From Blastocladiella emersonii ATCC 22665 (Eukaryota; Fungi; Blastocladiomycota), in contig JANHCV010000009.1 in NCBI GenBank assembly GCA_025594325.1, positions 992,001 through 1,056,000 on the forward strand: a DNA stretch of 64,000 bases, in the 5' to 3' direction. The notes beneath the pieces were generated by a model that saw only the letters and a list, made by a program, of their open reading frames with translations, was not told where the DNA came from and did no database searches. Below, in pieces: positions 9,833-36,834 of the stretch (its first letter is position 1; the number at the start of each line of letters is the position of its first letter). A program made the translations under genes and the position numbers.

Positions 9833-10339
9833 TCATTTCGACTCGCCGCGCGCAGTTTGGGTGACTCGGTGGGCCTGCGGCGCTCCTGCCCGAGGCTCGG
9901 AGACGGAGAAAAGTATCTCGCGCGCGTCACGTGATAAATCGACGCGTCTCACAGGTTTCGAAACGCGTCGCGACGCGGCCTTCGCGTCAGCTGAGACGTC
10001 TGAAATGTCCAGAAAGCGACGTAGGTTATCGAAACCACTGTCCATTACCTCAAATAGGGTCTTGCGCGGCCCGCGTGGCCACGTCCGTTCACAAGCGAAA
10101 CTTGCGCAGTCGGCCATGACTTGGCTAAGCGAGGAAGAGGTGTACGCAGGGGTTGAATTACTGCGGTTCGAGTCTTTCGCCAGCTTGTCAACGAGCTTGC
10201 GCAGTCGCTCCAGGTCATTCGTTTTGATGACAGACAGGAAGTTGGGGTCCACGGCTGCCACCTGCTGAGATGCATTCGAGCGAAGGGGGCGCAGCGGCCG
10301 CGCAGGGCCGTGCGCCTGACCTGCTTGAGCAGGTAGCAT
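9833..10339 (-). CDS. Orphan family member 1 (HxxxxPxR...K signature)
   Basis: ORF from MLPAQAGQAH. Its 44-aa block HGPARPLRPLRSNASQQVAAVDPNFLSVIKTNDLERLRKLVDKL aligns ungapped to three other ORFs in the window. The 3' end may be degenerate because it overlaps the motif at 9927. Confidence 0.55.
   Translation of the reverse strand: MLPAQAGQAHGPARPLRPLRSNASQQVAAVDPNFLSVIKTNDLERLRKLVDKLAKDSNRSNSTPAYTSSSLSQVMADCASFACERTWPRGPRKTLFEVMDSGFDNLRRFLDISDVSADAKAASRRVSKPVRRVDLSRDAREILFSVSEPRAGAPQAHRVTQTARGESK
9927..9950 (+). repeat. Island motif copy: TCACGTG-ATAAATCG-ACGCGTCTC
   Basis: Exact match to TCACRTG-N8-ACGCGTCTC. Confidence 0.85.
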
Positions 10340-10931
10340 TGTGGGCAGCTGTTGGTGAACGGATACCGAGTGGAGAGGAGGAGGAGGAATGATTGCTAGC
10401 GGGCGACTAACGCGTTGTGGTGTTTGCTCCCCCACAACGAGCCTACTTGTATGCACACATCACTCGTACGCACGCACGCACGCACTAGAGTCATGCGCCG
10501 TGTGCATATCAGGTTCGCAAATCCCTTGCTCGATGAATGATTGAGCCTGCATCACTCGCTGCATCACTAGTTCGCGCGGCTCCGACGTCCCGTCGCAACG
10601 TTTGGCTCCCTGAACACGGTGGTTCCCGCTCCAGGCGGTCGCATTTTGTTGTTCCAAGCTGGCAAGGCCGTGGGCCTCAAGTTTTGGAGCGCGAAAATCG
10701 CGCGCGTTGAGCCACACCCGCACACAGAGGTCACTAACCAGTGACCAAGGTGCGATCCTTCTTATAAGAAGGATCGCACATGAACTGCTAGCCATAATAC
10801 GATTGATGTCTTGCCTGATGTAGCCACAATCAACTGCTCTATCACCACGAGCGTGAAGTGGTTATCGAGGCCGTAGTCTCAAGCCTCCGACTTGTAGTTT
10901 AGGACGAACGTTGGGACGCGTCACGCGCGCG

Positions 10932-10955
10932 GCGTGTGGTAAATCGACGCGTCTC
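10932..10955 (+). repeat. Island motif, partial copy: GCGTGTG-GTAAATCG-ACGCGTCTC
   Basis: Shares 17 exact bases (TAAATCGACGCGTCTCA) with the 9927 copy. The heptamer is degenerate. Confidence 0.6.
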
Positions 10956-11222
10956 AACCGTCCCGGCCACCTGAGGTCTCACAATCGTAGCAGCAAGGAC
11001 CTGAAGGCGTCATCTTTGCTCACTCATTTCGAGAACGTGCTCAAGTTCCATCGATCAATCTGTCTATTGCCCAGAAATTATATTCTACCCGCTCGTGGTG
11101 CCGAATCACGACTTAGATCAGGAGCCCGAGCGCTGCAACCACGCCCATGATCGACGAGGTCAGGTAGACGGCGTTCGTCCCCGCAGAACTACTTGGCGAA
11201 CCGGTAGGGTCTCGCTTGGGCA

Positions 11223-12667
11223 TCACGCCGTTGGCCACGGGCGTCGTGGCCAGCGACTCGACGGCTGCGGGAGCCGTGAAGCTCGCGGGATCCAGCTTGT
11301 CGACCCTAAAGGAGTTGCAAAACGTGAGTTCACTGCTCGATCGCTCGGCTCAACGCAATTAGAGCCGCGTCGAACGTACCAGCGGAAGTTGAGCGAACCG
11401 TCAATCTGCGTCTCGATCTTGAGCAGGTTGATGACCTTGCGCGGCCAGCTCGCAGGCATCATCTTGGTCCCGCCGAGGACCACGATCGTCTGTCCAAGCA
11501 CCAGCGCCGTCGGGCTCTCGACAGCGAGCGGACCCATGTCGGGGTTCAGCACGATGCCCGCGGTCGCGGTGAGCGTGCGATCGCGCACGTACGTGACGAG
11601 CGAGCGGGCGCCGCGTCCGCCGAAATAGATGTCGTAGCGCGTGTCGTTGACGCCAACGTACGTGACGGCGGCGGGATCGCGGCCGACCGAACGCAGGTCG
11701 CCACGAACCAGCAGGTTACCCCGGCGCGTGTTGGCGGACTGCGGCGAGTACGACCACACCTGCGTCGGGAACTCTTCTAGCCGCAGCTTGACCTCGGCCT
11801 TTTCGTCGCGGCCCGACCAGAACATAGTACCGCCCGCCGCGTCGATGGCGCGGATCATGGGCACGCTCGGGTTGAAGGTGTCCGTGTACTTGACCTCGCC
11901 GAACTGGAGGTGTGGGGGTCGCGAAAAGTTAGCTACTGGCCGCTTCGATGCGGCGTCAATGTAGAAATGTGTACCTCATTGATGGTCGCGACCGGGGTCG
12001 TCTTGTTCACGTTGATGTTCAAGTCGAGGTTGGTGGTCGTAAACCCGCCGGTGCGGTTACGCGCGAGCCCGCCCATCACGAACGCCGTCGGGCGCATCGC
12101 GCCGGGCACCGTGTCCGAGAGGACCACGACGCGCGCCGGGTACAGCGGCATCGACGCGTTCTTGGTGCCCGTCGTGAGCTTGGCCTGGACGCTGGCCGAA
12201 TCGGCCGCGGTCGCAGGGAACTCGTACTCGAAGACCTGCGTGTTGGGCACGTTGACGGCCGAGTTGCCGCCCGCGAGCAGCACGCGGTACGGGTCGCTCG
12301 GCGACGGCTGCGACATGAGCGGCACGAGGTTGGCGACGCCCACGGCGCCGAGCGACGGCTGCATGGTGACGATGGAGGGCTCGGGGCCCGACTTGGCGAG
12401 GTCGAGCGGCTTGGAGAAGTCGAGCGGCTTGGAGAAGTCGAGCGAGAAGACGGTCGACAGCGGGCGGCCCGTCACGTTCGCGGCCGCGCCCGCGGGAACG
12501 GTCTCGCCGCCGTACACGGTCGCCAGCTTGAGACGCGACATGTACGTCACGGCGACGCCACGGAACCCGTTGGTGGTCTCGGCAGGCCACGGGCCGGCGG
12601 TGGCGGGCGCCGCGACGAGAGCGATCCAGAGCACGGCGAGCAGGGACACGAGGGAGATGGATCGCAT
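11223..12667 (-). CDS. Secreted protein with Kelch-like beta-propeller character (2 exons)
   Basis: Signal peptide MRSISLVSLLAVLWIALVAAPATA and repeated hydrophobic-GG motifs (VYGG, LLAGG, FVMGG, IYFGG, VVLGG). Intron at about 11911-11971. An 18-bp tandem duplication encodes FSKPLD twice. Confidence 0.6.
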
Positions 12668-14252: not shown

Positions 14253-16087
14253 ATGCAGTACCCGCCGACGCCGCTCCTGTCGCCCGAGTTCACGCCGAAG
14301 AAAGAGCGGCCGTCGAAGATCAAGGCGACGCACTCGCGGCCGGCGAAGAAGCGGATCTCGAAGCTGGTCCTCCCGCCCGGCTCGCTCGACGAGCACCTGG
14401 AGGATGTGGCCGCCGCAATCCAGCCGACGCCGCGCCAGGAGCGGCTCGCGCACGAGTGCACCGATCTCGTCGCCGACTACGTGCTGCGCTCGCTCCAGGC
14501 CGCGCTGCCGAAGCTCGAAGCGACCCGTGCCGCCCGTGTCGGCTCGCTGCACAAGAAGACGGCCATCCACTTCTCGTTCGACGTCGACCGCGTGTTCATG
14601 ATGAGCAACTTCAACCCGACGACGCGCCATCTCGAGGACACGCTCGTCGTCATCGAGCGCGCGCTCGCGCTCGCGGCCGACCCGCCGCGCTACTGGCCCG
14701 TTGACGACGGGCTCGTCATGTGGGTCGCCGACGTCAAGAGGCGCGCCAACAGTATCGCGTGCACCGTGTACGCCGGCCCGCTCAACCTCGAGTTCGACGA
14801 GAGCGACGGCGGCGTGCGGCACGCGGGCGCCGCCGTGCCCGCCTTCAAGGTCAAGCTCGACCTGCTGTGCGCGACCGAGGTCGTCGCGGACCCGGACCAC
14901 CGCATGACGCGGCGCGGGACCGCCGCGCAGGTCGAGTCGCTCCGCCACGTTCTGTCGACCAACGAGACCGTGTCCAAGTCGCTGCACCGCCTGTACCAGC
15001 CGCTCGTGTCCGAGGCCACGGTCGAGACGGTGCTGCGCGAGCCCGACGTCGTGCGCAAGCTGATCCGCATCCTCAAGCTGTGGGGAATGCTCGTCTTCTC
15101 GAGCAGCGCGACCGCCATGTCCAAGTCGACCATCTTCGAGAACCTCGCCGTCTACGCGGTCCGCGAGTACGCGTACGACCGCCGCGAGCTCACGCTCGAG
15201 GCGCTCGCCATCAAGGTGATCCGCTATATCGCCAACCTGGACAAGCTGCAGCTCGGCGGGACCCGCAAGGACAGGCCTGCGGCGGCTTATGTATTGCACA
15301 TGGTATGTTTTCACTCACCTGAACGTCTCCCACTGGCTGGCCTCTAACGACCCGCGACCTCGTCGTCGTCGTCTAGTGTGACGAGTCTAACAACCTGACG
15401 CGCACCGACGACTCGCGCGTGTTCTCGGTCGAGTACCAGGGCGACCTCAAGCACGCGGCCGAGTCGCTCCTCCCCGACACCCCCGCGGCGTTCTGGCTCA
15501 TGGCGTACCCGCAGGACAAGCGGCTGATCACGACCACGCTCATGTTCCTGCGCATCCGCGTGCTCGACGCGACGTGCGCGACCACGCCGATGCCCGGGTT
15601 CTGGCACCTCGACAAGCGGTTTGAGGAGATCGGCATGCACCACCAGATTGCCGCCCTCGTCACGGTCGCCCTCACGCTGCAGGACTGGATCCGCGGCGCG
15701 CTGTGCGCCGCCGTCGGCGATACGGCCAAGGCCGTGATCCAAGGTATGGAGCAGTACCTCGACTCGGAGTACACGCTCGACTGCACGCCGGGATCGCCGT
15801 ACTCGACGGACGACGGGCGCACCGCGCTCCGCTCGGTCGCCGAGACTACCGTGCAGCTGCTCCAGCGGCTCGTCGGGTTCACCAAGCGCGCCGAGGCGTA
15901 CGACGACACGACCCAGTTCGACGGGTTTGCGGTCGTGATCCCCGTCGTACCCGACGTCGTCTCGCTACACGTCGAGGTCCGGTGCCCCGTCGTCGACACG
16001 CACAAAAACCTCAAGGAGGTCGCTGAGGATGCGATCGAGGAGGAGAACAGGCGCGAGAGGATTGAGGCGCGCAGGAACGGCGTTTAG
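14253..16087 (+). CDS. 2'-5'-oligoadenylate synthetase (OAS)-like nucleotidyltransferase with an extra C-terminal domain (exons 14253-15302 and 15377-16087, 586 aa)
   Basis: GSLHKKTAIHFSFDVDRVFMMS has the same spacing as OAS [22 protein letters not shown]. Also a third Asp in KLDLL, VRKLIRILKLW (cf. LKSLIRLVKHW), IFENLAVYAVRE (cf. YALELLTIYAWE), YVLHMCDESNNL (cf. VILDPADPTGNL) and N-terminal PGSLDEHLED (cf. AKSLDKFIED). The phase-0 GT..AG intron keeps the frame. Confidence 0.82.
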
Positions 16088-16336: not shown

Positions 16337-17353
16337 TCAATTATACAGCTCTACCAACGCGTTACTCGGCGCATTGAAGCTAGCCAACATCTTCTGCGCA
16401 ACAGCCACAAGCTCGCGACAGTCGATCCGCTGCGCAAACTCGACCAGTTCGGTCGCCTGGCTCGCGTCCTTGATGACCGGATCCACGCCGACCGACTCGA
16501 AAAACTGGTGAATTGCATGGGGAACCGGCTCGCCGGGCACCCAGCCCGAGTACACGTAGGCAAGGACCATTGCAAAGGGCGCCATTGGCCACGACAGCTT
16601 GATCGGCTGTCCTTCGCTGATCCGCTTCGCCCAAGCTCCTCGGATCAGCGCGGCGAAACCGGGCTGGGTGCTGAGAATGAGCTTCGCCGCGTACACGACC
16701 GTGATCATGGGCGGCGAGTGGCTCACGCGAACGTGGAAGCACAGGTCGCAGCGTGCCGGGTTGTTGAGCTTGCTGGTAATGACCGTTGATGCCCACCACG
16801 GGAGCCGCTGCTCGACTACCGGGTGCAGGAACTTGATTACAACGCGGCGAAGTCCCGTTTCGAACAAGCTCGCGACCGTGGTCTCGACGAACACGGCGCT
16901 GTGTAGCGTCAAGCACGCCCGCTCGCCGGAATTTGGGATCTGACAGCTCGCAGTAGGCGTCGGAGCGCTGAACAGCGCGTCGCGACAAGCGGGGAACGGA
17001 AGGCTGATAGAACACTCGATCGCACTCGTCACGCGGGCCACGGCGATGCTGACCTCGGCCGTCTCGTTGAAGGCGCCAGGTCGGACGAGTACGGAGAAGC
17101 TCTTGAACGGCAAGTGGGCCGGCGCGCTACACACGTCCGAGGCGAAGCCGCGGCTCAGATCCGAGCTGCGCGCGAGCGACTCGGCGTGCTTGCGTTGAGC
17201 GAACAATGTGAACCTTGGAGCGCCTGCCGACGCGACATCGGACGACTGCCCTGGTTCCGCGGGTGGGATGGTAGAGAAGGTGAACGTCGTCGCGATCGCA
17301 TCAACAGCTACGAGCGGCGGGCCAAGGCGAACCTGCGCCGTGAACGCTCGCAT
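16337..17353 (-). CDS. BTB/POZ-domain protein with an uncharacterised N-terminal beta-rich region
   Basis: LNNPARCDLCF...VYAAKLILSTQPGFAALIRGAWA...PIKL...FAMVLAYVYSGWVP is homologous to the 39114 and 51038 proteins. The start is uncertain. Confidence 0.7.
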   Translation of the reverse strand: MRAFTAQVRLGPPLVAVDAIATTFTFSTIPPAEPGQSSDVASAGAPRFTLFAQRKHAESLARSSDLSRGFASDVCSAPAHLPFKSFSVLVRPGAFNETAEVSIAVARVTSAIECSISLPFPACRDALFSAPTPTASCQIPNSGERACLTLHSAVFVETTVASLFETGLRRVVIKFLHPVVEQRLPWWASTVITSKLNNPARCDLCFHVRVSHSPPMITVVYAAKLILSTQPGFAALIRGAWAKRISEGQPIKLSWPMAPFAMVLAYVYSGWVPGEPVPHAIHQFFESVGVDPVIKDASQATELVEFAQRIDCRELVAVAQKMLASFNAPSNALVELYN

Positions 17354-17626
17354 GGAGGTCTCGCATCGTCTTCTCGGCCAGAAACACGTACGGGGAGGCG
17401 CAGATTGTCGCGCAAATTGTTGCGCAGAGTCACGGCTTCGGGCATGGCGAGGTTTGACGTATCGCAGTCCGAGAGCCTGGAGAGCTAGCGAGGGACTTGT
17501 CCCCGCAGAAGGCGGTTCGATCCACCTCGCGCAGTGTCTCCCGTCACGGACGAACCGACGAGCGCGGACGAACAGACGAGCGCACAGGTCATGTGTCAGC
17601 AATTCGTCGAGCGAGTGCCGCTGCTT

Positions 17627-17650
17627 GAGACGCGTCGGTCTATCATGTGA
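17627..17650 (-). repeat. Island motif copy (inverted): TCACATG-ATAGACCG-ACGCGTCTC
   Basis: Exact consensus match on the minus strand. Inverted relative to the 16242 copy. Confidence 0.85.
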
Positions 17651-17710
17651 TCCTTGTCTCGCGCTGCGCCACACGGTCGTTACGGGATGTCCCAAAAACG
17701 GCGTGTAGTA

Positions 17711-18951
17711 TTACGCAATAACATCATCAAACAAAATCTTCATGAGCTCGCCGACAAGCTGCGCGTTGAGGCTGTTGCCGAGGAGGCGGTACTGCTGCGC
17801 GCGCGAGACGGACTTGGGGAAGGTGAGCGAGTCGGGGAAGCAGTGCAGGCGCGCGACCTCGGCGGGCGAGAAGAAACGCGGGCGCAGCTGGACCATGCGG
17901 TCCACGTCGCTGATCAGCTGCGAGCCGCCGGCGGGCAGCAGCTCCGAGACGAGGAACGAGCCGGATCCGAAGATGTGGCGCGACCCGTACGCCTTGGTGA
18001 AGGTCGACGAGCGCGTCGCGTTCGAGGAGACGACGTCTACACGGGAGGGGCGGGGTGTGAGAGTCGGGGGTTTGGGGAAAGGGGTGAGGAGAGATGAAGC
18101 GGACCGAAGTTGAACTTGTGCGACTTGCGGATCCACGCTTCGGGCACGAGGCACGTCTCGTCCACTTCCACGTCGAAGTACGACGAGAGCGCGGCGACCT
18201 CGACTGCCGGGTTGTCGGAGGAAGTAGGAGAAGAGGAGGGCGACCACACGACGGGCCAGGTGGTCTGGATCACGCCGCGCTCCGAGTAGAGCGGTGTGGG
18301 CTCCGACTCGGCCTCGTCCGCAGCCACCGGGGCCGCCGGCAGGTCGTCGGCCCGGCGACGAGCCATGAGAAAGTATCGTAGTCGGGCGTTCGGGATGCCG
18401 AGGTGGGTTGGCTCGAGGAGACACTCCGCGATCGCGTACCCGCGCCTGTCGAGGGCGTCGACGAGGATGCGGCGGCACTCGCTCGTCTCAAAGTTCTTGA
18501 CATTCTCGAGGAACAGGTACCGCGGCGGGACCGCCATGCGCTCGAGCAGCGCGACGAGGTGCAGCAGGCCGCGGCTGCGGTCGTCCTCGTGGTCGAGGCA
18601 CTTGCCGCCGCGCGTGAACGGCTGGCACGGCGGCGACAGGAACCAGGCGTTGGCACGGTACCGTTCCACGTCGGCGAGCGACAGGTGCTCGATGGACGCG
18701 GTGCTCAGCGCCGTCGCGGGGAAGTTGTGCGCGTACACGGTGTTGGCGACCTGGTTGACGTCGTACGCGGCGACCACGTCGCCGGGCGCACCGGTGTGCT
18801 TGAAGCCATAGTGCTACGGGCGGAGTCGGGGTTGGGGTCAGGACTTGGCCGAGTCGAGCCGCGCAGGGAGCGAGCCCGGCCGTACCAGGCCGCCGATCCC
18901 GGAAAAGAACTCAATGGCGCGGATCTCCGTGTTGGTGTTGCTGCTAGTCAT
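17711..18951 (-). CDS. DNMT2: DNMT2/TRDMT1 tRNA (cytosine-38-C5)-methyltransferase
   Basis: Motif I EFFSGIGG, motif IV SPPCQPFTR, motif VI LENV, CFT/SSTFTKAY region and motif X QQYRLLGNSLN. Two introns. Confidence 0.95.
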
Positions 18952-19479: not shown

Positions 19480-22400
19480 ATGGACGACCCCGACACGCCC
19501 ACCACGCAGGCGGCGTCGGCGGCCGCCTCGGCGCCCCAGTTCGACCCGGCGCTCGTCGTGTCGCACCTGCACGGCGTCGGCGCCTCGCTCTTCGAGGCCA
19601 CGCCCAGCGAGATCGCCCTCGCCCTGTCCGGCGTCCCCGACGCATTCGAGAAGTGCCGCAAGTTTGCCAACGAGGCCGGCGTCCCGACCCTCGTCGTTGT
19701 CAAGGAGCGCGTTCCCCAGGGTACGCTTGCCGCTCGCTCGCTCGCTCGTCGTCGTCGTGATCCCGATCTGATCGCTCGCATCGTACCCGCCGCCAGAGAA
19801 CGACGCTGTCGTCGTCGACGACCCCGACCAGCCGGCGCCCGAGGTGACCAAGTTCGACCTGCGCCTCGACGTGCACTACTCGGCCAACCTCGTGTCGTCG
19901 ATCGTGTTCATCAAGCGCGCGCCCGTGCTCGACCCCGCCAAGCCCATGAGCTCGCAGGTCACCTTCATCCACCTGCCGGGCCCCGCCGCGGGCTTCGCGT
20001 CCGGCGGGCCCGTCGACGCGGCCGCCCCGACCATGTTCTACGAGCTGATCCACAGCTACGTGCACCACGCCGTGGCGCCCTACTTCAACGCCTTTGTCAA
20101 CTCGCAGGCCGCGACCGACGCCGACGCCAAGGACGCGGCCAACGCGGCCAACGGCAGCGTCGGCAACTCGACGTCGTCGCTCGGCCAGCCGCTGCTGTCC
20201 GCGGTCGCCGCCAAGCGCGCGGCCGAGGACACCAAGGGGATCCCCGTGGCCAAGAAAAAGTTTGCCGAGCTCGAGCTGTCGCTCCTGCACCTGCAGCAGA
20301 ACGTGGACATCCCCGAGGTCACGCTGCACGCGCACCCGGTCATCCACCAGGCGATTGCGGCCGCGCGCGACGCCGGCCGCCGGCCCAACGTCGATCTGAT
20401 CCCGCCCGAGCTCCTCGCCGACTCGTCGTTCCTCAACAAGCTCCAGGGCGACGTCAACTCGTGGGTCAAGGAGATCCAGAAGGTCACCAAGCTCTCGCGC
20501 GACCCCGCCTCCGGCACCGCGTCGCAGGAGATCAACTTCTGGCTCAACATGGAGCGCGCCCTCGAGAAGATCGACAAGCAGCTCAAGTCCGAGGAAGTCC
20601 GTACGTATCTCTTTTTTGGTGCTTGTCGTGCTTGTGAGCGGCTCCACTCACATCTTGCGCGCGAAAAATAGTCCTCGTCCTCGACGTGCTCAAGCACGCC
20701 AAGCGGTTCCACGCGACCGTGTCGTTCCGCGCCGACACGGGCCTGCAGGAGGGCATGGACGTGGTGCACAAGTACAACATCCTGATGAAGGAGTTCCCGA
20801 TCGATGAGCTGCTGGCCGCCACGGACCTCGGCCGCATCAACGAGGCCCTGGTCCTCGTCTTCAACCACATCAACAAGAAGATCAAGCTGTCGTCGTACCC
20901 GGTCAAGCGGCACCTGCTCCTCGTCGAGGCCATCTCGCGCGACCTGCTCGACCAGATCCTCAAGGTGCTCAAGGCCCGCCGCCTCATGTACCTCAGCTAC
21001 GACGACTTCAACAAAGTCACGGCCGGGTGCGCCGCCGTCTTCGACACGTGGGACTCGTGCATCAAGGACTTTTCGGGGCTCGCCCGCGAGGTGTCGCGCA
21101 AGCGCAACGACAAGTACCTGCCCATCAAAATCACCAACTTCCACGCCAAGCTCCAGGAGCGCATCGAGTACATGCGCCGGTTCCGCAAGCAGCACGAGCA
21201 GCTCCAGGCTACCATCGGCCGCGTCGTCGGGTCCCCGAGCCACCTCGCCCCCGGCATGCGCCCGCGCCCCGCCATCGCCGCCGCTCCCGGTTCGGCCGCT
21301 GCGGTTGGCGCCGCGGCCGCGGCCGCCGCCGACATCAACGCGCTCGACGAGGTGGCGTCCGCGTACGAGGTGGTGCGCACCGTCGACGTGCTCGACGTGA
21401 CGGGCGAGGGCACCGAGATCTGGGCGGGCGCCGAGGAGGCGTACAACGAGCGTGTGGGCCGCGTCGAGAACATCATCATCGCGACGCTGCGCGACAAGCT
21501 CGGGTCGGCCAAGAACGCCAACGAGATGTTCCGGGTCTTCTCCAAGTTCAACGCGCTGTTCGTGCGGCCCAAGATCCGCGGCGCGATCCAGGAGTACCAG
21601 ACCCAGCTCATCGACTCGGTCAAGGACGACCTGCGCAAGCTCCAGGACAAGTTCAAGCTGCAGTACCCGTCGTCCGAGGCGTTCCACATGTCGGGCGTGC
21701 GCGACATCCCGCCCGTGGCCGGCGCCATCACCTGGGCCCGCCAGATCGAGCGCCAGCTCGACATGTACATGCGGCACGTCGAGGACGTGCTGGGCCGCGG
21801 GTGGGAGAACTACGCGGACGGCGCGCGGCTCGCCCAGGACTCGGTCTCGTTCCGCAAGAAGCTCGACACGCGCGCCATCTACGAGCAGTGGGTCCAGGAG
21901 ATCCTCCAGCGCGACCTCAAGGTCACGGGCCGCATCTTCGACGTGGTCCGCCAGCGCGCCAACAACAACCAGCTCCAGCTCGTGGTCTCGTTTGACCCGC
22001 AGATCATCACCCTGTTCAAGGAGGTCCGCAACATGCAGTGGCTCGGGTACTCGATCCCCTCGACCGTCGCCAACATCGCCAAGGAGGCCAAGCGCGTCTA
22101 CCCGTTCGCCGTGTCGATGCAGGAGACGATCCGCACCTACCAGCTCACGGTCGACAAGCTGCGCTCGCAGCCGCGCGATGTCGCGCTGCTCGTCGCCGTC
22201 TACCAGCGCGACGTCCAGGGGCTCATCGCCCGCGGCATCCACTACCGGTGGGAGGTGTTCAGCACGCTCGACGTGCGGTCCGACGGGTCCAAGCACGTCG
22301 GGTTCGTCCGCGAGCTCGCCAACACCGTGTCGCTGTTCCAGGACAAGGTCGTCAACGTCATGGACGTGATGGCGCACATCAACGCCAAGGTTCGCGAGCT

Positions 22401-25400
22401 CGAAAAGTGCGCCTACGCGTTCCCCACCTTCGAGGCCATCCTCGGCGACATCCAGGCCCACGTCGACAAGCTCAACCTCGACGGGTACTCGAACCTCAAC
22501 GTCTTCGTCGACCACCTCGACAAGCAGCTCGAGCTCGTCCTCGTCAAGCGCCTCACCACCGCCATGAACCAGTGGGCCCGCGCCTTCGAGGCCACCCACG
22601 ACGACGACTACGCCACCGCCGCCGGCGGGTCCGGCGCCGCCGCCGCCGCGCGCCGCAAGCGCCACTCGATGCTGCGCAACGCCAGCAGCAGCGCCGCCGC
22701 CTCGGTCGTCGACGGTGGCGAGGATGCGGCGTCGGTCGTTGACGACGCCGATGCCTCGGCCGAGGCCGGCCTCGGCGGCGCCGACGTCGTCAAGCCCAAG
22801 CTCAACCCGCTCGTGCACGAGGTGACGATCCGCAACCAGATCATGTATATTGACCCGCCGCTGGAGCGGGCGCGCGCGACGTGGTACCACCAGCTGCAGC
22901 AGTGGATGGCGACCGTGTGCAACCAGTCGCGGATCCAGTCGACGCACTACCAGCTGTCGATGCGGCAGGCCGAGAAGGTGACCTACGGGTCGCTCCTCGA
23001 GCGGCTCCCCGAGACGTCGCTCCGCGCCGTGTACTCAATCATCGAGGCCAAGATGGCGCAGGTCGAGGCGTACGTCGAGGTGTGGCTCCAGTACCAGTCG
23101 CTGTGGGACCTCGAGCCGTCCACCGTCTACGAGGCGCTCGGCGACGACCTCGCCAAGTGGCAGGGGATCCTGCTCGAGATCAAGAAGGCCCGCGGCACCT
23201 TTGACGTGTCCGACACGGCCAAGCTGTTTGGGCCCATCGTCATCGACTACGAGCAGGTGCAGTCCAAGGTCAACGCCAAGTACGACCAGTGGCAGCGCGA
23301 GATCCTCACCAAGTACGGCGCCAAGCTCGCGCAGGCGATGCGCGACTTCCATGCGACCATCGCCAAGGCGCGCGGCGACCTCGAGGCCTTCTCGGTCGAC
23401 TCGGCCGCGACCGGCGACACGGTCGCCTTCATCATCTTCCTCCAGGACCTCAAGCGCAAGGTGGTCCCGTGGTCGGGCGATGTGGACGCGTTCCGCAGCG
23501 GGCAGAAGGTGCTCGAGCGCCAGCGGTACTCGTTCCCCGCCGACTGGATCTACATTGAGCAGATCGACGGCGAGTGGTCCGCCTTCAACGAGATCCTGAT
23601 CCGCAAGGACAACTCGATCCAGGAGCAGGTGTCGGGGCTCCAGCTCAAGATCGTCCAGCAGGACAAGGCGGTGCAGGCCAAGTGCGCGTCGCTCATGGAC
23701 GAGTGGGACAAGACCAAGCCCGTCCAGGGCGACATCCCCGCCGAGCACGCCCTCAACACGCTGTCCATCTACGAGGCCAAGCTCACGCGCATCCGCGACG
23801 AGGTGCAGCAGCTCGCCAAGGCCAAGGAGGCGCTCGGGCTCGTCGACTCGGGCCGCGACACGGCGTCGCTCGATGTGGCGCTCGAGGAGATGGCCGACCT
23901 CAAGGCCGTCTGGTCCGCGCTCAGCTCCGTGTGGGCCGAGCTGTCGGAGCTGCGCGAGCTGCCGTGGGCCAATGTCTCGGCGCGCAAGGTGCGCAGCCAG
24001 CTCGACGCGCTCGTTGCGCAGACGCGCGAGATGCCCGCCAAGATGCGCCAGTACGCGGCCTTCGAGTACATGCAGGACACGCTCAAGGGCCTCGTGCGCA
24101 TGAACGGCCTGCTGTCCGAGCTCAAGTCCGAAGCGCTGCGCGACCGCCACTGGAAGGCGCTCCTCAAGCAGCTCAACGTGCACCTGCTGCTCACGGACCT
24201 CACGCTCGGCCACGTCTGGACGCTCGACCTCCGGCGCAACGAGCAGGTGATCCGCACCGTCATCACCACGGCGCAGGGCGAGATGGCGCTCGAGGAGTAC
24301 CTGCGCCAGGTCAAGGAGACATGGACCAACTACTCGCTCGAGCTCGTCAACTACCAGAACAAGTGCCGGCTCGTCAAGGGGTGGGACGACCTGTTCTCGG
24401 TGTGCTCGGAGCACCTCAACTCGCTGCAGGCCATGCGCATGTCGCCGTACTACCGCGTGTTCGAGGAGGAGGCCGGGTCGTGGGAGGACAAGCTCAACCG
24501 CGTCCAGCTCCTCTTCGACGTGTGGATCGACGTGCAGCGCCAGTGGGTGTACCTCGAGGGCGTGTTCACGGGCTCGGCCGACATCAAGCACCTGCTCCCC
24601 GTCGAGACGTCGCGGTTCCAGAACATCAACACCGAGTTCATGGCCGTGATGAAGAAGGTGTACAAGTCGCCCTACGTCCTCGACGTGCTCAACATCCAGA
24701 ACATCCAAAAGTCCATGGAGCGGCTCGCCGACCTGCTCACCAAGATCCAGAAGGCGCTCGGCGAGTACCTCGAGCGCGAGCGGTCCGCGTTCCCGCGCTT
24801 CTACTTTGTGGGTGACGAGGACCTGCTCGAGATCATCGGCAACGCCAAGGACGTGGAGCGCGTCCAGAAGCACCTCAAGAAGATGTTCGCCGGCATCTCG
24901 ACCGTCACCACGGGCAACGACGGCGAGATCACCGCCATCAAGTCCAAGGAGGGCGAGACGGTCCCGTTCCGCACCCCCGTCCCCGTCAAGGACCGCCGCA
25001 TCAACGAGTGGCTCACGGGCGTCGAGCGCGAGATGAAGACGTCGCTCGCCCTCATCCTCGAGGACTGCCACGCCGAGTACGCCGCCATCTTCCACGGCCA
25101 GCAGCAGCAGGCTGCCGGCGCCGACGCGGCTGCCGTCGCGACCACGTCCGCGCAGCTCGCGGCCGCGCTCCTCGCGTGGATGGCCAAGTTCCCGTCGCAG
25201 CTCATCGTGCTCGCGTCGCAGATCGTGTGGACCGAGTCGGTCGAGGCGTGCCTCGCGCAGGACCAGCCCGCGGGCCCGACGCTCGGCCTCGTCGAGACGG
25301 TGCTCCAGGTGCTCGCCGACGCGGTGCTCACGGACCTCGACCTCATGACGCGCAAGAAGTGCGAGCACCTTGTCACGGAGCTCGTGCACCAGCGCGACGT

Positions 25401-28400
25401 GATCCGCACGCTGCTCAAGAACGGAATCGCGCGCGCCACCGACTTCGAGTGGCTCTACTACATGCGCTTCTACCTCGACCCCAAGGCCGCCAACCCGCTG
25501 CAGCGGCTCGAGGTCCGCATGGCCAACGCCAAGTTCTACTACGGCTACGAGTACCTCGGGATCCCCGACCGCCTCGTCCAGACCCCGCTCACGGACCGCT
25601 GCTTCCTCACGCTCACGCAGGCGCTCGAGGCGCGGCTCGGCGGCAGCCCGTTCGGCCCCGCCGGCACGGGCAAGACCGAGTCCGTCAAGGCCCTCGGCGT
25701 CGCCCTCGGCCGGTTCGTGCTCGTGTTCTGCTGCGACGAGAACTTTGACTTCCAGGCCATGGGCCGCATCTTCGTCGGCCTGTGCATGGTCGGCGCGTGG
25801 GGCTGCTTCGACGAGTTCAACCGCCTCGAGGAGCGCATCCTCTCGGCCGTGTCGCAGCAGGTGCAGTCGATCCAGCTCGGCCTGCGCAAGGTCGGCGCCG
25901 CGCTCAAGCAGAACCCCGCCGCCGCCACCGCCTTCGAGATCGAGCTGCTCGGCCGCCAGGTGCCCATCAACGCCGACACGGGCATCTTCATCACCATGAA
26001 CCCGGGCTACGCCGGCCGCTCCAACCTCCCCGACAACCTCAAGAAGCTGTTCCGCAGCGTCGCCATGACCAAGCCCGACCGCGAGCTCATCGCCCAGGTC
26101 ATGCTCTACTCGCAGGGCTTCAAGTCGGCCGAGACGCTCGCGACCAAGGTCGTCCCGCTGTTCAACCTGTGCAGCGAGCAGCTGAGCTCGCAGTCGCACT
26201 ACGACTTTGGTCTGCGCGCGCTCAAGTCGGTCCTCGTTTCCGCCGGCAACCTCAAGCGCATGCGCATCGTCTCGGGCGACGCGGCCGCCGCCGGCGCCGT
26301 CGTTGACTCGGAGCTCAGCAGCCCGATCACCGAGCAGGAGATTCTCATCCAGTCGGTCTGCGAGACGGTCATGCCCAAGCTCGTCATCGACGACCTGCCG
26401 CTGCTCAAGTCGCTGCTCCAGGACGTGTTCCCCGGCATCGAGTACAAGCCCGTTGACCTCGGCAAGCTCGAGGACGCGATCCGCGCCGTGTGCAAGGAGC
26501 GGTACCTCGAGTGTACCGACGCGTGGATGGCCAAGATCCTTCAGCTGTACCAGATCCAGCACATCCACCACGGCCTCATGATGGTCGGGCCCTCGGGTAC
26601 CGGGAAATCGGCCAACTGGAAGGTGCTGCTCGAGGCGCTCGAGCGCGTCGAGAACGTCGAGGGCGTCTCGTACGTCATCGACCCCAAGGCCATCCCCAAG
26701 GACAACCTGTACGGCACGCTCGACGCGACCACGCGCGAGTGGACCGACGGCCTGTTCACGCACATCCTGCGCAAGATCATCGACAACGTGCGCGGCGAGA
26801 GCGGCAAGCGCCACTGGATCATCTTCGACGGCGACGTCGACCCCGAGTGGGTTGAGAACCTCAACTCGGTCCTCGACGACAACAAGCTGCTCACGCTGCC
26901 CAACGGCGAGCGCCTGTCGCTCCCGCCCAACGTGCGCATCCTGTTCGAGGTCGACACGCTCAAGTACGCGACGCTCGCCACGGTCTCGCGATGCGGCATG
27001 GTGTGGTACTCGGAGGAGGTGGTCACGCCCGAGATGATGTGCGCGCACTACCTCAACACGCTCGCCGCCGAGCCGCTCGACATGGGCGAGGAGGCCGCCG
27101 TCGCGCTGCCGCAGGAGGACGTGCTCAACCTGCAGCGGTCCGTGGTGTCGGCGCTCGCGCCGCACATGGAAAAGGACGGGTTCGTGCTCCGCGCCCTCAA
27201 GCACGCCGAGACGGACATTGAGCACATCATGGACTTCACGGCCGGCCGCGTCATCAACACGCTCTTCTCGCTCATCAACAAGGCCATCCGCAACATGATC
27301 GAGTACGACGCGCAGCACACCGACTTCCCGCTCTCGCTCTCCGCCATCGAGGCGTACACGAGCAAGAAGCTGCTCACGGCCGTCGTCTGGTCCTTCTCGG
27401 GCGACGCCAAGCTCGACGCGCGCAAGGACCTGTCCGATTTCGTCCACGGCATCACCACCATCGACCTGCCCTTCTCGGGCGACGGCAACGTCATCGACTA
27501 CGACGTGACGCTCCCCACGGGCGAGTGGATCAACTGGACGTCGCGCGTGCCGCAGATTGAGATCGAGACCCACAACGTGTCGCAGGCCGACGTGGTCGTG
27601 CCGACCGTCGACACGGTCCGCCACGAGCAGGTGCTGTACAGCTGGCTCAGCGAGCACAAGCCCGTCCTCCTCTGCGGGCCGCCCGGGTCCGGCAAGACGA
27701 TGACGCTGTTCTCGGCGCTGCGCAAGCTGCCCGACATGGAGGTCGTCGGGCTCAACTTCTCGTCGGCGACCACGCCCGACCTGGTGCTCAAGACGCTCGA
27801 GCAGTACTGCGAGTACAAGAAGACGCCGAGCGGGCTCGTCATGTGCCCGCAGACGCTCGGCAAGTGGCTCGTCATCTTCTGCGACGAGATCAACCTGCCC
27901 GCGACCGACTCGTACGGCACGCAGAAGGTGCTCTCGTTCCTGCGCCAAATGATCGAGTCCAACGGCTTCTGGCGCACCTCGGACCTGCAGTGGATCAAGC
28001 TCGAGCGCATCCAGTTTGTCGGCGCGTGCAACCCGCCGACGGACCCGGGCCGCGTGCCCATGTCGCACCGGTTCCTGCGCCATGCGCCGCTCGTCATGGT
28101 CGACTACCCGGGCCGCACCTCGCTCATCCAGATCTACTCGACGTTCGCCCGCGCGCTGCTCAAGGTCATCCCGACGCTGCGCGGGTACGCCGACGCGCTC
28201 ACCAACGCCATGGTCGACTTCTACCTCGACTCGCAGCAGCGGTTCACGCCCGACATCCAGGCCCACTACGTGTACTCGCCGCGCGAGCTGACGCGCTGGG
28301 TCCGCGGCATCTACGAGGCCATCTACCCGCTCGATGACCTGTCGGTCGACGGCCTCGTCCGCGTGTGGGCGCACGAGGCGCTCCGCCTGTTCCAGGACCG

Positions 28401-31400
28401 TTTGGTCGCTGAGGACGAGCGCGAGTGGACCGACCAGCAACTCGACGAGGTCGCCTTCACCCACTTCCCGTCGCTCGACCCCGCCGCGCTCCAGCGCCCG
28501 ATCCTCTTCTCCAACTGGCTCACCAAGAACTACCTCCCCGTGCAGCGCGACTCGCTCCGCGACTTTGTCAAGGCGCGCCTCCGCGTCTTCTACGAGGAGG
28601 AGCTCGACGTGCCGCTCGTCCTGTTCAACCACGTCCTCGAGCACGTCCTGCGCATCGACCGCGTCTTCCGCCAGATGCAGGGCCACCTGCTGCTCATCGG
28701 CGTGTCGGGCTCGGGCAAGACGACCCTGAGCCGCTTCGTTGCGTGGATGAACGGCTTCTCCGTGTTCCAGATCAAGGCGCACAACAAGTACACGGGCGAC
28801 GATTTCGACGAGGACCTGCGCCACGTGCTGCGGCGCGCCGGGTGCAAGGGCGAGAAGATCTGCTTCATCATGGACGAGAGCAACGTGCTCGACAGCGGGT
28901 TCCTCGAGCGCATGAACACGCTGCTCGCCAACGCCGAGGTGCCCGGCCTGTTCGAGGGCGACGAGTACGCGGCGCTCATGAACCAGTGCAAGGAGGCGGC
29001 GGCCAAGGAGGGCCTGCTGCTCGACTCGTCCGAGGAGCTGTACAAGTGGTTCACGCGCCAGGTCATGAAGAACCTGCACGTCGTCTTCACCATGAACCCG
29101 CCCGAGAACGGGCTCGCGTCGCGCGCCGCCACGTCGCCCGCGCTCTTCAACCGCTGCGTGCTCGACTGGTTCGGCGACTGGAACGACGAGGCCTTCTACC
29201 AGGTCGGCAAGGAGTTCACGGACGTGCTCGACCTCGACGTGCCCAACTTCAACGCCCCCGACACGATGCCCGTCGCGGTGCGCGACCTCGTGCTCCCGCC
29301 CACGTACCGCGACGCGGTGCTCAACGCCTTCGTCCACGTGCACCAGTCGGTCCACCACACGAACCAGCGCCTCGCCAAGCGCCAGGGCCGGTACAACTAC
29401 TGCACGCCGCGCCACTACCTCGACTTCATCCGCCACTACGTGCGCCTGTTCAACGAGAAGCGCGAGGAGCTCGAGGAGCAGCAGCGCCACCTCAACGTCG
29501 GCCTCGACAAGCTCAACGACACGGTCAAGCAGGTCGAGGAGCTCCGCGGCTCGCTCGCCATCAAAAAGTACGAGCTCGAGCGCAAGGACCAGCTCGCCAA
29601 CGAGAAGCTCAAGCGCATGGTTGCCGAGCAGAACGAGGCCGAGAAGAAGAAGTCGGCGTCGCAGGAGATGTCCAAGATGCTCGAGTCCCAGACGCTCGAC
29701 ATCCAGCAGCGCCGCGAGGTGGTCATGGCCGACCTGGCCGAGGCCGAGCCCGCCGTCCAGGAGGCGCAGCGCAGCGTCCAGGGCATCAAGAAGCAGCAGC
29801 TGACCGAGGTCCGCTCCATGGGCAACCCGCCCGAGGCCGTCAAGATGGCCATGGAGTCGGTGTGCACGCTGCTCGGCCACCAGATCGACTCGTGGAAGAG
29901 TGTCCAGGCCGTGATCCGCCGCGAGGACTTCATCGCGTCGATCATCAACTTCGACACGGACTCGATGATGACGCCCGCCCTGCGCGAGCGCATGAAGCGC
30001 GACTACCTTAGCAAGCCCAACTACCACTTCGAGGTCGTCAACCGCGCGTCCAAGGCGTGCGGCCCGCTCGTGCAGTGGGTGATCGCCCAGGTCAAGTTCT
30101 CCGAGATCCTCGTCAAGGTCGGCCCGCTCCGCAACGAGGTGCAGCACCTCGAGGAGAGCGCCGAGCGCACGCGCATCGAGGCGCAGAAGATGGAGCAGCT
30201 CGTGCGCGACCTCGAGGTCAGCATCGCGCGGTACAAGGAGGAGTACGCCGAGCTCATCTCCGAGACGCAGATGCTCAAGGCCGAGATGGAGCGCGTCAAG
30301 CACAAGGTCGACCGGTCCGTGTCGCTCATCGCGTCGCTCAGCAGCGAGAAGGTGCGCTGGGAGGAGACGTCGCAGACGTTCGAGCTCCAGATGGCCACGC
30401 TCGTCGGCGACGTGCTGCTCAGCGCCGCGTACCTCGCGTACGGCGGCTACTTTGACCAGCAGTACCGCGGCAACCTGTGGTCGAGCTGGCGCGGCCACCT
30501 GCGCCTGTCGGGCATCTCGTTCAAGTCGGACCTCGCGCTCATCGAGACCCTGTGCACGGCCGACCAGCGCCTCAACTGGCACGCCAACGCGCTGCCGACC
30601 GACGACCTGTGCATCGAGAACGCCATCATGATCGAGCGCCACAACCGCTACCCGCTCATCATCGACCCGAGTGGCCAGGCCACGGCCTTCATCGCCAACG
30701 AGTACAAGGACCGCAAGATCATGGTCACGTCGTTCCTCGACGACTCGTTCCTCAAGAACCTCGAGTCGGCGCTGCGCTTCGGCAACCCGATCCTGATCCA
30801 GGACGTGGAGAACCTCGACCCGATCCTCAACCCCGTCCTCAACCGCGAGCTGCGCCGCACCGGCGGCCGTGTCCTGATCCGCCTCGGAAACCAGGATATC
30901 GACTTCTCGCCGTCGTTCACCCTGTTCCTCGCGACGCGCGACCCGAGCGTCAACTTCCCGCCCGACATTTGCTCGCGCGTGACCTTCGTCAACTTCACGG
31001 TCACCAAGTCGTCGCTGCAGACGCAGTGCCTCAACAAGGTGCTGTCGCAGGAGCGGCCCGACGTGGACGAGAAGCGCACCGACCTGCTCAAGCTGCAGGG
31101 CGAGTTCAGCTTCCGCCTGCGCCAGCTCGAAAAGTCGCTGCTCCAGGCGCTCAACGAGTCCAAGGGCAACATCCTCGACGACGACCACGTCATCGCGACG
31201 CTCGAGGTGCTCAAGAAGGAGGCGGCCGAGGTGCAGCAGAAGGTGCTTGAGACCGACGCCGTCATGAAGGAGATCGACACGGTCACGGCCATGTACACGC
31301 CCTTCTCGAGCGCGTGCGCGAGCATCTTCTTCGCCATGGAGCAGCTGTCGCACATTCACCACTTCTACCAGTTCTCGCTCGAGTTCTTCAACGAGGTGTT

Positions 31401-33864
31401 CCAGTTCGTGCTCAAGAGCGCCAAGCTCGCGGCCGTGCGCGACTACAACGCACGCCTCGACGTGCTCATTCTCGAGCTGTTCAAGGAGTCGTTCCGCCGC
31501 GTCAGCCGCGCGCTCGTCCACGACGACCACGTCATGTTCGCCACGATCCTCGCCCAGATCTACCTCAGCCTCGAGGCCCGCCACCTCGTCCTCAGCTCCG
31601 AGTTCGAGTACCTGGTCACGGGCGTCGCCCCGCCGCTCAAGGGCAACTCGGTCGCCGCGCCCGACTTCCAGGCGCGCCTCGAGCAGATCGCCGCGCTCGA
31701 CTCGTTCCGCACGACCGTGTTCCCGCACGTGCAGGCCAACGGCACGCAGTGGGAGGCGTTCCTGCAGTTCCGCTCGCAGGCGATTCCCGAGTGCTGGTCG
31801 CCCAACGGCCACGCGATCGTCGCGCACATCAACCGCACCATCGTCGCCAAGGCGTTCCGCCCCGACCTCGTGCCCGCGTCCATCGAGCAGCTCATCCACG
31901 CCGTGTTTGAGAACGAGTTCCCGCTCAGCTACGAGACCAACCTCGGCAAGATCGTTCAGGAGGAGGTGCACGCGCTCAGCCCCGTCGCCTTCTGCGCGCA
32001 GCCCGGCCTCGACGCGAGTAACCGCGTCGAAAACCTCGCGCAGGACATGGGCGTCGCGCTGCAGTCGGTCGCCATGGGCAGTGCCGAGGGCTACGGCCTC
32101 GCCGACAAGGCCATCAGCAACGCGGTCCAGCGCGGCGGGTGGGTGCTGCTCAAGAACGTGCACCTCGCGCCGCAGTGGCTCAGCCAGCTCGAGAAGCGCC
32201 TGCACTCGCTGCGCCCGCACGCCGCGTTCCGTCTCTTCCTGACCATGGAGACGAACCCGCGCGTCCCCGTCAACCTGCTGCGCCAGTCGCGCATCTTCAT
32301 GTTCGAGGCGCCGCCCGGCATCAAGGCCAACCTGCTCGACTCGCTCAACTCGATCAAGTCGATGCCCGCGCTCACGCGCGGCCCCGCCGAGAAGGCCCGC
32401 CTGTACTTCCTCGTCAGCTGGCTGCACGCGCTGCTCCAGGAGCGCCTGCGGTACGCGCCGCTCGGGTGGTCCAAGGTGTACGAGTTCAACGACGCGGACA
32501 TGGAGTGCGCGCTGTTCACGCTCGACGAGTGGTGCGAGAAGGCGGCGGGCGGCCGCAGCAACCTGTCGCCGGCCAAGATCCCGTGGGCCGCCATCAAGAC
32601 GCTGATCAAGGAGTCCGTGTACGGCGGCAAGATCGACGTCGAGTTCGACCAGTACGTGCTCAACTCGTTTGTCGACCAGCTCATTGTGCCGCAGGCGTAC
32701 GAGCTCGACTTCCCGCTCGTCCACGGCCACCTCGCGATCCCCGAGGGCACCCGCATCGAGCACTTCATCGAGTGGGCGCAGCGCCTGCCCGAGCGCGAGC
32801 CGCCCAAGTGGCTCGGCCTGCCCGAGAACGCCGAGAAGGTGATCCTCGCCCACCACGGCACCAAGCTGCTCGCCCAGATCCAGAAGATGCGCAGCCTCGA
32901 GGACGACTCGGAGGAGGACGTGTCGCCCGTCGCGACGCGCGCCGCCACGCCCGTCACCACGACGGCTTCCGCGGCTGACGGCGGCCTGTCGCACCACGCC
33001 CACCACTCTTCGGCCTCGTCGTCGTCCAAGGCCACGGCGGTCCCCGCGTGGATGAAGGCGCTGCACGCGTCGGTCGACGAGTGGACCAAGCTGCTGCCGG
33101 CGTCGCTCACGGCGTTTGCGCACCCGAACGTCAACGACCCGATGGCGCGCTTCTTCCTGCGCGAGCACGCCATGGCGCGCAAGTTGCTCGCCAAGCTCAA
33201 GCAGGACCTGCACCACCTCAAGCTCGTGTGCGAGGGCCACATGAAGCAGACCAACCACCTGCGGTCGCTCATGTCGGCGCTGACCAAGGGCGTGATCCCC
33301 AAGGAGTGGCGCGCGTACAAGGTGCCGCGGTCGTGGCAGGTGCGCGCGTGGCTCGACGACCTGGTGCGCCGCCTCGAGCAGCTCAACCAGCTCGCGGCGC
33401 TGTCGTCGTATGACGGCGGCGTGCACGTGTGGCTCGGCGGCCTGTTCATGCCCGAGGCCTTCATCACGGCGACGCGCCAAGCGTTTGCGCAGCGCAACGG
33501 GTGGTCGCTCGAGGAGCTCGAGCTCGACCTCGACCTGTCGGGCGCGTCGTCCTCGCCCGCTACGCCCGCGGCCGACCACGGGTTCACGCTCACGGGGCTC
33601 CGCCTCGAGAGCGCCGCCTGGGTCGACGGCGTCATCTCGCTCAGCAGCACCATGCACAGCTCGCTCGGGCCCGCGGTCCTCCGCTGGGTCAAGGCGGGCG
33701 CGGCGTCGGACACCAAGACGCCCATGGCCGCCGGCGCGCGCGAGGCCCCGATCCCCGTGTACCTCAACGAGGACCGGTTCAGCATGCTGTTCAGCGTCCA
33801 GCTCCCGACGCGCGAGTCGGCCCGCGAGCTGCTCCAGAACGGCGCCGCGATGCTCACCATGTAA
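19480..33864 (+). CDS. DYN1: Cytoplasmic dynein 1 heavy chain
   Basis: Protein of more than 4600 aa with four P-loops (GPAGTGKT, GPSGTGKS, GPPGSGKT, GVSGSGKT), CFDEFNR and a stalk coiled coil. Two 5' introns (about 19721-19797 and 20601-20670). Confidence 0.99.
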
Positions 33865-35636: not shown

Positions 35637-36321
35637 GGTGTGATGGGACGGGTGCCCGGTCGGCGCGGCGAGGAGGAGCGGGGCGGGGTCGGAGGCGGCT
35701 CAGAGGTTCACGGCAGGACGATCTGGCCTGCGGGAGCGCGATGCAGCGAGTCAAGCTTCGTAGATGCGTGTGCTTCGTGTCGTTCCCGGGCGAGAATCGG
35801 CGTTGGCGGTGTGAGGCGCAACGAGAACGCTGATCAACTTTTTACGAGCTTCAACGTCACATGATGCACTCGAAACGATCGCCTCTCCTCCTCCACGGCC
35901 GTTTGGCAACGAAACGAATGTAAACATGAACCAAGACTATGTGCAATGTGATCAGAATGCAGATATTTATGAGCCGACTAAGCCTTGTTGAAAGACTTCG
36001 CGGCCGAGCTCGCGCCGGTCCCTCCACGGCGGTTGGAGCTGAGCTTTCTTTCGCATCTGGCTCGCCCTGAATGACGACGCGACGTAGCTCAAAATTATTG
36101 CCATTGCACTCGAGCAGATGCGCGGTAACTTCGAGGTCAACTGCAACGGGCGCAACGCGGTCCCCCGCTCCAACTTTCCGCATCAGAACGGCGAGCTGAC
36201 CATCGCGGCCGCGTCAATCTTTGTGAACGTGACCGAATCGGACGCCTTCTACGCTATCCTCGCTGGTCCATTCACATCGCTCAGGAGCTTTTGCCGCGCA
36301 CGCGCGACCCCCGCAACGCGT

Positions 36322-36417
36322 TCATGATTCGTGAGCTTGTCCTTTGCCGCCACCTCACACTGTCCCGCGTCATGATTCGCGAGCTTGTCCTTCGCTGCCA
36401 CGTCACACTGTCCCGCG
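36322..36417. repeat. 48-bp tandem duplication (2 copies, 4 mismatches)
   Basis: TCATGATTCGTGAGCTTGTCCTTTGCCGCCACCTCACACTGTCCCGCG is followed directly by a near-identical copy. Confidence 0.9.
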
Positions 36418-36576
36418 TCACGACGCTCCGCTGAACCAACGCGCCTCGCGCGACATACTCAGTCTGCTTGCTTGCCTTGATCGCATCTCTGATCCCTCAC
36501 TGATCCCACGTTTCCTTGCAATTAACGTGTAAACCACGACGCGCAGCGCATATATCTCTCATCAACGCGCTGAAGG

Positions 36577-36672
36577 GTTGAGTTGAGTTGAGGTTGAGGT
36601 TGAGGTTGAGGTTGAGGTTGAGGTTGAGGTCGAGGTCGAGGTTGGGTGGGTGGGTGGAGGGGGGGGGGGGGT
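36577..36672. repeat. (TTGAGG)7(TCGAGG)2 microsatellite followed by G-runs
   Basis: Read directly at 36588-36641, followed by GGGT repeats and a G homopolymer. Confidence 0.9.
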
Positions 36673-36834
36673 TGAAAGCCCAGCACGGAGCGGAGCAGTT
36701 CCTAACGCTACCAGTCGCCAATTATTATTTAAGCTTCATGAAAACAAGCCTCAGGTCCAGGTTTACAGCGCAGAGATGTTCGGGAAGAATCGACTCGATA
36801 GAGTTGCCCCTTGGCTCCACTGGCGGTCCTGGAC

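Follow-up and report, generated by a model that had tools for sequence, protein, structure and literature searches.

The 2'-5'-oligoadenylate synthetases (OAS) and the cGAS-like enzymes connect bacterial anti-phage defence with animal innate immunity. Members of the OAS superfamily are present in eight of the 12 eukaryotic supergroups, and the superfamily possibly goes back to the last eukaryotic common ancestor, while the surveyed proteins are described as 'certifiably absent' from many genomes of plants, fungi and amoebozoans that are well assembled (Culbertson & Levin 2023, PMC10732462). In the accessible part of the supplementary files of that survey, none of 14 fungal genera checked (Blastocladiella, Allomyces and Catenaria included) is named, and the only fungal name seen is Rhizophagus, with viperin. 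A literature search found no paper naming both oligoadenylate and Blastocladiomycota. Zoosporic fungi, Allomyces among them, are hosts to persistent infections by giant viruses, and which defences these hosts use has been posed as an open question (PMC13533422).

The gene described here lies in a stretch of 64,000 nucleotides (the window) from Blastocladiella emersonii ATCC 22665, a zoosporic, water mould-like fungus of the order Blastocladiales. A preliminary description of this DNA picked it out as an OAS-like enzyme of the CD-NTase superfamily, encoded in an accessory island together with BTB adaptors. The analysis below supports the first part of that description, in that the gene product is probably a template-independent nucleotidyltransferase of the OAS/CD-NTase superfamily, and a highly divergent one, and leads to a different view of the second.

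Results

The gene and its relatives

The gene occupies positions 14253-16087 of the window on the plus strand and has two exons, with the start ATG at 14253 and the stop codon at 16085-16087. The spliced coding sequence of 1761 nt translates exactly into a protein of 586 residues (P0001), which is 100% identical to the hypothetical protein H9P43_007283 of B. emersonii ATCC 22665 at NCBI; the genome had thus been rightly called fungal-type from its letters. Exon 1 (14253..15302, +) encodes residues 1-350; its GC3 is 0.95 when it is read in the coding frame, the two remaining frames having 0.67 and 0.44. It is followed by a phase-0 intron of 74 nt (GTATGT...CTAG; 15303..15376, +), placed between M350 and C351 by exact exon mapping, and by exon 2 (15377..16087, +), which encodes residues 351-586 and carries the stop codon.

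The protein consists of a tail, an OAS-like core and an extra domain. The N-terminal tail, residues 1-44 (14253..14384, +), is Pro/Lys-rich and weakly conserved in the five-sequence alignment, and neither AlphaFold model (both with pLDDT 37-38) gives it any secondary structure. The core, residues 45-385, is made up of an OAS-like N-lobe with the palm of the Pol-beta nucleotidyltransferases (NTases), residues 45-215 (14385..14897, +), which includes an LDEHLED helix, and of a helical C-lobe resembling OAS1_C, residues 216-385 (14898..15481, +, the intron lying inside these coordinates). The N-lobe is supported by its profile matches in the PDB and by PADLOC, and the C-lobe by its own, marginal profile match in the PDB and by a HMMER domain. 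The remaining residues, 386-586 (15482..16084, +), form a family-specific C-terminal domain.

An exhaustive phmmer search of 1.84 billion cluster representatives returned just two other clusters, represented by a protein of Catenaria anguillulae PL171 (P0002; E 1e-25) and one of Allomyces arbusculus (P0003; E 4e-16). Further searching added an orthologue from A. javanicus (P0004) and a second A. arbusculus copy (P0005), which sits on the same contig as P0003. These five sequences make up the family alignment and profile used throughout. Metagenome and viral contigs scanned with the family profile gave pattern matches, none of which was confirmed as a relative. Since the only relatives found are those of Blastocladiella, Catenaria and Allomyces, the family is so far known just from the Blastocladiales. 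Identity across genera is 24-27% (26% between P0001 and P0003).

Similarity to OAS proteins

The five-sequence HMM was compared with all 177,635 distinct PDB sequences using HMMER, and its significant matches were OAS proteins only: pig OAS1 (E 2.5e-5), human OAS2 (5e-4), OASL (2.6e-3) and human OAS1 (0.014). The next match after these was an unrelated protein (E 0.036), aligned to the C-terminal region alone. A three-sequence profile gave the same picture. When the lobes were searched separately, the N-lobe profile matched OAS2 (1.3e-5, in both its OAS units) and OAS1 (5.7e-5), with no other PDB match below an E value of 0.5, and the C-lobe profile had a single PDB match at E<=10, to residues 189-314 of OASL, at a marginal E of 0.075. 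At that E value the C-lobe alignment is colinear, its last part setting DPADPTLNV of OASL opposite the family motif D352-x-x-N-N-L. A second HMMER domain aligned to residues 196-266 of pig OAS1.

The motifs recognised earlier fit these alignments, and their positions (GS, DVD, the third Asp, KLIRxxKxW and DxxNNL) proved correct on the sequence. The glycine-serine pair and the D-x-D motif are separated by 11 residues, the same spacing as in pig OAS1 in the ungapped HMMER alignment, where G-S-x11-D-x-D runs without a gap along a 17-residue segment of the pig protein; the likeness in spacing to mammalian OAS1 had been correctly seen. In the C-lobe, the helix RKLIRILKLW (R268-W277; 15054..15083, +) aligns to LKSLIRLVKHW of OAS1 and OASL, with R268, L270, R272, K275 and W277 invariant among the five sequences. 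The motif D352-E-S-N355-N356-L357 (15380..15397, +), with invariant D, N, N and L, aligns to DPTLNV of OASL and belongs to the segment YVLHM|CDESNNL, which straddles the intron. The proposal of colinear OAS matches over the whole fold thus holds for a profile spanning both lobes, the C-lobe alone being marginal (E 0.075).

Defence-system profiles and protein language-model features point in the same direction. In PADLOC all five members were matched, and every model that matched was a CBASS 'oligonucleotide-cyclase': PDLC00803 matched five of five (best E 3.4e-5) and PDLC00808 four of five (best 9.7e-6), the matches on P0001 being confined to residues 75-138, the segment from GS to DxD. The NCBIfam model CBASS_cyclase_a (NF041116) matched one member of the five (E 1.4e-4). 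Among the ESM-atlas features, OAS1 clusters came top for both P0001 (0.96, 194/256) and P0003 (0.95, 194/256); for both proteins DZF clusters came second (0.93), followed by CBASS cyclases (0.89-0.91). Assignment to the OAS/CD-NTase superfamily, as first made from the letters, is therefore supported by the PDB profile, PADLOC and language-model features alike.

Pfam gave no match in either exon, and OAS1_C (PF10421), NTP_transf_2, SMODS and Mab21 (PF03281) were each unmatched by any member at E<=10. Solved chains of cGAS or the cGLRs were likewise absent at E<=10 from the PDB matches of the whole-family and N-lobe profiles. The AlphaFold2 models reached a pLDDT of only 38.5 and 37.4 (single-sequence and five-sequence runs), and Foldseek against the PDB with the second of them gave TM scores of about 0.1, which is noise. 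The predicted order of helices and strands fits OAS1, which at a pLDDT of 37-38 is weak evidence. Taken at the level of profiles, homology to OAS is well supported by the profile spanning both lobes and by the N-lobe, and marginally by the C-lobe on its own.

The active site

About 10% of the columns in the five-sequence alignment are invariant, and these include G97, S98, K101, T103, D110, D112, D203, R272, K275, W277, D352, N355, N356 and L357. The active-site loop G97-S98-x11-D110-V-D112, with K101 and T103 (14541..14588, +), is preserved in all five members, G97-S98 lying at 14541-14546 and D110-V-D112 at 14580-14588 (+). The third catalytic carboxylate, D203 in KVKLDLL (14859..14861, +), is also invariant in five of five, and is placed on a predicted beta strand (198-204/205) in both AlphaFold models, each with a pLDDT of 37-38. 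Together, V-G97-S98-x11-D110-V-D112-R-V and D203 conform in every member to the Pol-beta NTase signature hG[GS]-x9-13-[DE]h[DE]h with a third carboxylate on a later strand. The set of three catalytic carboxylates, D110, D112 and D203, is thus intact, as had been read from the B. emersonii sequence, and intact throughout the family.

Human OASL and the DZF proteins have lost their catalytic residues. Such selective retention of the active-site residues in otherwise divergent sequences speaks for a functional nucleotidyltransferase and against a pseudoenzyme of the DZF or OASL kind. The basic residues with which OAS1 contacts dsRNA are presumably not conserved in the Blastocladiales family.

The C-terminal domain

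The extra domain, of about 200 residues, is carried by all five members. Its profile has no match in Pfam or in the PDB, and its ESM-atlas leads are below threshold (0.82). The possibility that it is a degenerate second OAS unit, as in OAS2 and OAS3, was considered and rejected, because hhalign found no relation to either OAS lobe beyond five residues that overlap by construction. Its few invariant residues are mostly hydrophobic, with H438 and D568 in addition, and it is constrained (dN/dS 0.29-0.41 within Allomyces). The make-up of its invariant residues suggests a binding or regulatory role rather than a second catalytic unit.

Descent and genomic context

Intron positions were obtained by mapping each protein exactly onto its own locus. 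All the genes examined, from the three genera, have a phase-0 intron immediately before [CV]DxxNNL, at one and the same position of the alignment: the junction reads LHM|CDESNNL in Blastocladiella, VHQ|CDPLNNL in Catenaria and LNR|VDxLNNL in the three Allomyces genes. Codon use is native, with a GC3 of 0.94 over the whole coding sequence against 0.98 in a nearby dynein heavy chain gene, and the GC content of the gene (0.68) is like that of the core genes of the window, the flanks being somewhat lower (0.59-0.63). Together, the common intron position and the native codon bias show vertical descent from a shared ancestor of the three genera, so that contamination, recent transfer and strain-specific cargo are all ruled out.

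In comparisons within Allomyces (NG86), where dS is about 0.5, the dN/dS ratio is 0.26-0.41 overall and below 0.55 in each of the three domains, the C-terminal one included, ratios that are probably inflated by strong codon bias; between genera dN/dS is saturated and uninformative. The Allomyces values indicate purifying selection on a fast-evolving protein. By these measures the gene is old, vertically inherited and constrained, and is not accessory cargo.

Downstream of the gene lie an ORF earlier called BTB, a DNA-methylase-like ORF 1.6 kb away (Pfam DNA_methylase, E 7e-7) and, 4.6 kb downstream, the dynein heavy chain gene (4392 aa). The ORF called BTB has no support as a BTB protein, with no Pfam match (E<=0.01 for the whole ORF, E<=10 for its last 187 aa) and no PDB match, so the BTB adaptors of the preliminary description are unsupported. 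When the window was compared by tblastx with the Catenaria and Allomyces loci, only the gene itself was matched. Synteny was confined to one pair of loci, that of P0003 in A. arbusculus and that of P0004 in A. javanicus, and no neighbour recurs between the window and the four other loci, among which no linked effector, Cap gene or candidate partner was seen. The absence of a common neighbour leaves the 'accessory island with BTB adaptors' unsupported, and linkage yields no effector candidate. Orthologues in Catenaria and Allomyces, the shared intron site, native composition (GC 0.68, GC3 0.94) and the nearby DNA-methylase-like ORF and dynein gene also speak against an island.

Discussion

It is likely, from the conservation of the active site and the profile matches, that the protein is an active enzyme, which would bind two NTPs at an OAS-type site and join them without a template into a short oligonucleotide, linear or cyclic. 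Beyond this chemistry the proposal becomes tentative. Synthesis may be turned on by a ligand, for example viral nucleic acid, with either the core or the extra C-terminal domain as the sensor, and the product may carry the signal, as a second messenger, to some effector that is not RNase L, providing an antiviral alarm. A ligand-switched alarm of this kind is conceivable rather than probable, and an immune-signalling role for the gene in any form is possible at about the same level. The most specific form, a Blastocladiales OAS-type alarm enzyme whose C-terminal domain senses infection (e.g. by giant viruses) and whose product switches on an effector with no relation to RNase L, has to be regarded as somewhat more doubtful again.

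The chemistry would be similar, and the history different, if the family were a CD-NTase with an origin of its own in a bacterial CBASS cyclase, in the manner of the 'eSMODS' acquisitions, and so stood outside the eukaryotic OAS clade; its product would then be a cyclic di- or trinucleotide. The PADLOC cyclase models, which match all five members (best E 9.7e-6), the single CBASS_cyclase_a match and the place of CBASS cyclases among the ESM features (0.89-0.91) are in keeping with such a descent, and the OAS superfamily itself nests in the bacterial clade C (PMC10732462). However, no solved bacterial CD-NTase appears at E<=10 among the PDB matches of the whole-family and N-lobe profiles, where OAS proteins appear at 1e-5, and the PADLOC matches on P0001 cover only the segment from GS to DxD. 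LIRxxKxW and DxxNNL, the motifs of the C-lobe, line up with OAS and OASL. The gene also has introns, one of them common to the genera, and native codon use, so that any transfer from bacteria would be old. A separate descent from CBASS thus seems unlikely.

Membership of the OAS/CD-NTase superfamily is also to be preferred to a housekeeping or RNA-modifying role, in which a Pol-beta NTase of the terminal uridylyl or adenylyl transferase or CCA-adding type would tail RNA and make no signal. The hG[GS]..DxD..D signature is shared across the whole Pol-beta superfamily, one member of the five has a weak match to the NCBIfam archaeal CCA-adding model (cca_archaeal, E 0.0057), and the C-terminal part shows a weak atlas similarity to PAP_assoc and PAP_central (0.77-0.81). 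Against this, PAP, TUTase, CCA-adding, Utp22 and DZF chains were all absent at E<=10 from the PDB matches of the whole-family and N-lobe profiles, and for PAP_assoc, PAP_central, tRNA_NucTransf2 and Nrap there was neither a Pfam match nor a matched solved chain. The sequence evidence therefore does not group the family with the housekeeping Pol-beta NTases, the grouping that the preliminary description had named as telling against its own reading. Housekeeping NTases are, moreover, widely conserved, while this family was found in a single order of fungi and changes quickly (26% identity from one genus to another). A tailing enzyme of this sort is quite improbable.

Improbable to a greater degree is a non-catalytic, RNA-binding scaffold of the OAS/DZF type, comparable to OASL or NF45/NF90. 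The DZF clusters at 0.93 in the atlas features and the weak Pfam DZF_N matches in two Allomyces members (E 0.08-0.09) would suit a scaffold, but G-S, D-x-D and the third D are invariant in the five sequences despite an inter-genus identity of 24-27%. That the OAS resemblance arose by chance in an orphan protein, as the lack of Pfam matches and the poor structure models might suggest, is hardly credible: the methods concur (HMMER at 1e-5 with zero bias, PADLOC in five of five, language-model features of two distant members), the likeness keeps the same order through both lobes, and invariance falls exactly on the motif residues, so that, at least as a matter of sequence, the resemblance is beyond chance.

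HMM-based searches appear to have overlooked the Blastocladiales family. What is new is a very divergent enzyme, of OAS type as predicted from its profile, with a novel fused domain, in a kingdom without an earlier report of such enzymes. A constrained family in zoosporic fungi that is invisible to Pfam and has kept its active site intact would extend the OAS superfamily into the Fungi, and it would offer a concrete candidate answer to the question of how these fungi defend themselves against giant viruses (PMC13533422). If the alarm-enzyme reading is true, fungi would have their first immune pathway based on a nucleotide second messenger. Both Allomyces and Blastocladiella grow in culture, which makes the prediction directly testable.

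Comparison with known systems

The OAS-like proteins of non-animal eukaryotes (PMC10732462) resemble the family in being non-vertebrate and in their sparse distribution. The DZF proteins (NF45/NF90, Zfr, Strbp) belong to the same superfamily fold class and are the second-best language-model neighbours of the family (0.93); unlike them, the Blastocladiales proteins have invariant catalytic carboxylates.

With the bacterial CBASS CD-NTases the family shares an active-site segment that matches cyclase profiles in all five members, and the enzyme logic would be alike, namely the untemplated synthesis of a nucleotide signal. Unlike the CBASS enzymes, the family leaves Pfam SMODS (PF18144) unmatched, and the P0001 matches are limited to the GS..DxD segment. 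The gene is also eukaryotic and intron-containing, and stands without an operon partner (Cap or effector) or a recurrent neighbour.

The closest likeness in layout is to vertebrate OAS1, OAS2 and OASL (PDB 1px5, 4rwn, 4ig8, 9h1z and 4xq7), with which the family is colinear. The common order is an N-terminal helix, G-S-x11-D-x-D, a third Asp on a strand, the LIRxxKxW helix, an ExLxxYA-like helix and then the DxxNNL/DPxxN segment. RNase L is not known in fungi. Unlike the vertebrate OAS proteins, the family lies below Pfam detection, and it adds to the shared core a basic tail of 44 residues and, at the C-terminal end, an unrelated domain of about 200 residues.

Genomic neighbourhood of the OAS-like gene

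The OAS-like gene lies 4.6 kb from a dynein heavy chain gene (window 20686-33864, + strand), which is a core motor gene, flagellar or cytoplasmic. This gene is a single unbroken ORF encoding a complete protein of 4392 aa, with DHC_N1, DHC_N2, AAA_6 to AAA_9, MT stalk and Dynein_C domains (best E 1e-131). Closer to the OAS-like gene, an ORF on the - strand (17711-18478) gives a C-terminal match to the C-5 cytosine methyltransferases (PF00145, E 6.8e-7), which is consistent with the DNMT2-like gene that the preliminary description separately placed at the border of this stretch.

The lower-GC islands remarked on in the preliminary description are matched by a GC content of 0.53-0.58 at 36000-40000 and 50000-56000, as against 0.65-0.74 in the rest of the window, and the OAS-like gene is located outside both. 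The ORF of 452 aa at 16337-17695 (- strand) had been called a BTB gene in the preliminary description, an identity that found no Pfam or PDB support in the portions and at the cut-offs searched: Pfam matched neither the full-length ORF (E<=0.01) nor the final 187 residues when these were scanned separately (E<=10), and phmmer matched no PDB sequence to the final 254 residues.

Family copies in Allomyces

The two copies in A. arbusculus, at 10001-12030 of locus L002 and 10001-12072 of locus L003, are separated by ~50 kb on contig JADHYV010000009.1 and are 70% identical. Adjoining the second copy is a gene (L003 12526-15403, - strand) for a 933-aa protein in which the E2 ubiquitin-conjugating domain UQ_con is unusually joined with TerD and a weak F-box-like match; no such combination was seen beside the remaining family members. 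The A. javanicus copy occupies a locus syntenic with that of the A. arbusculus protein P0003, but is closer in sequence to the second A. arbusculus copy, P0005 (81%), than to P0003 itself.
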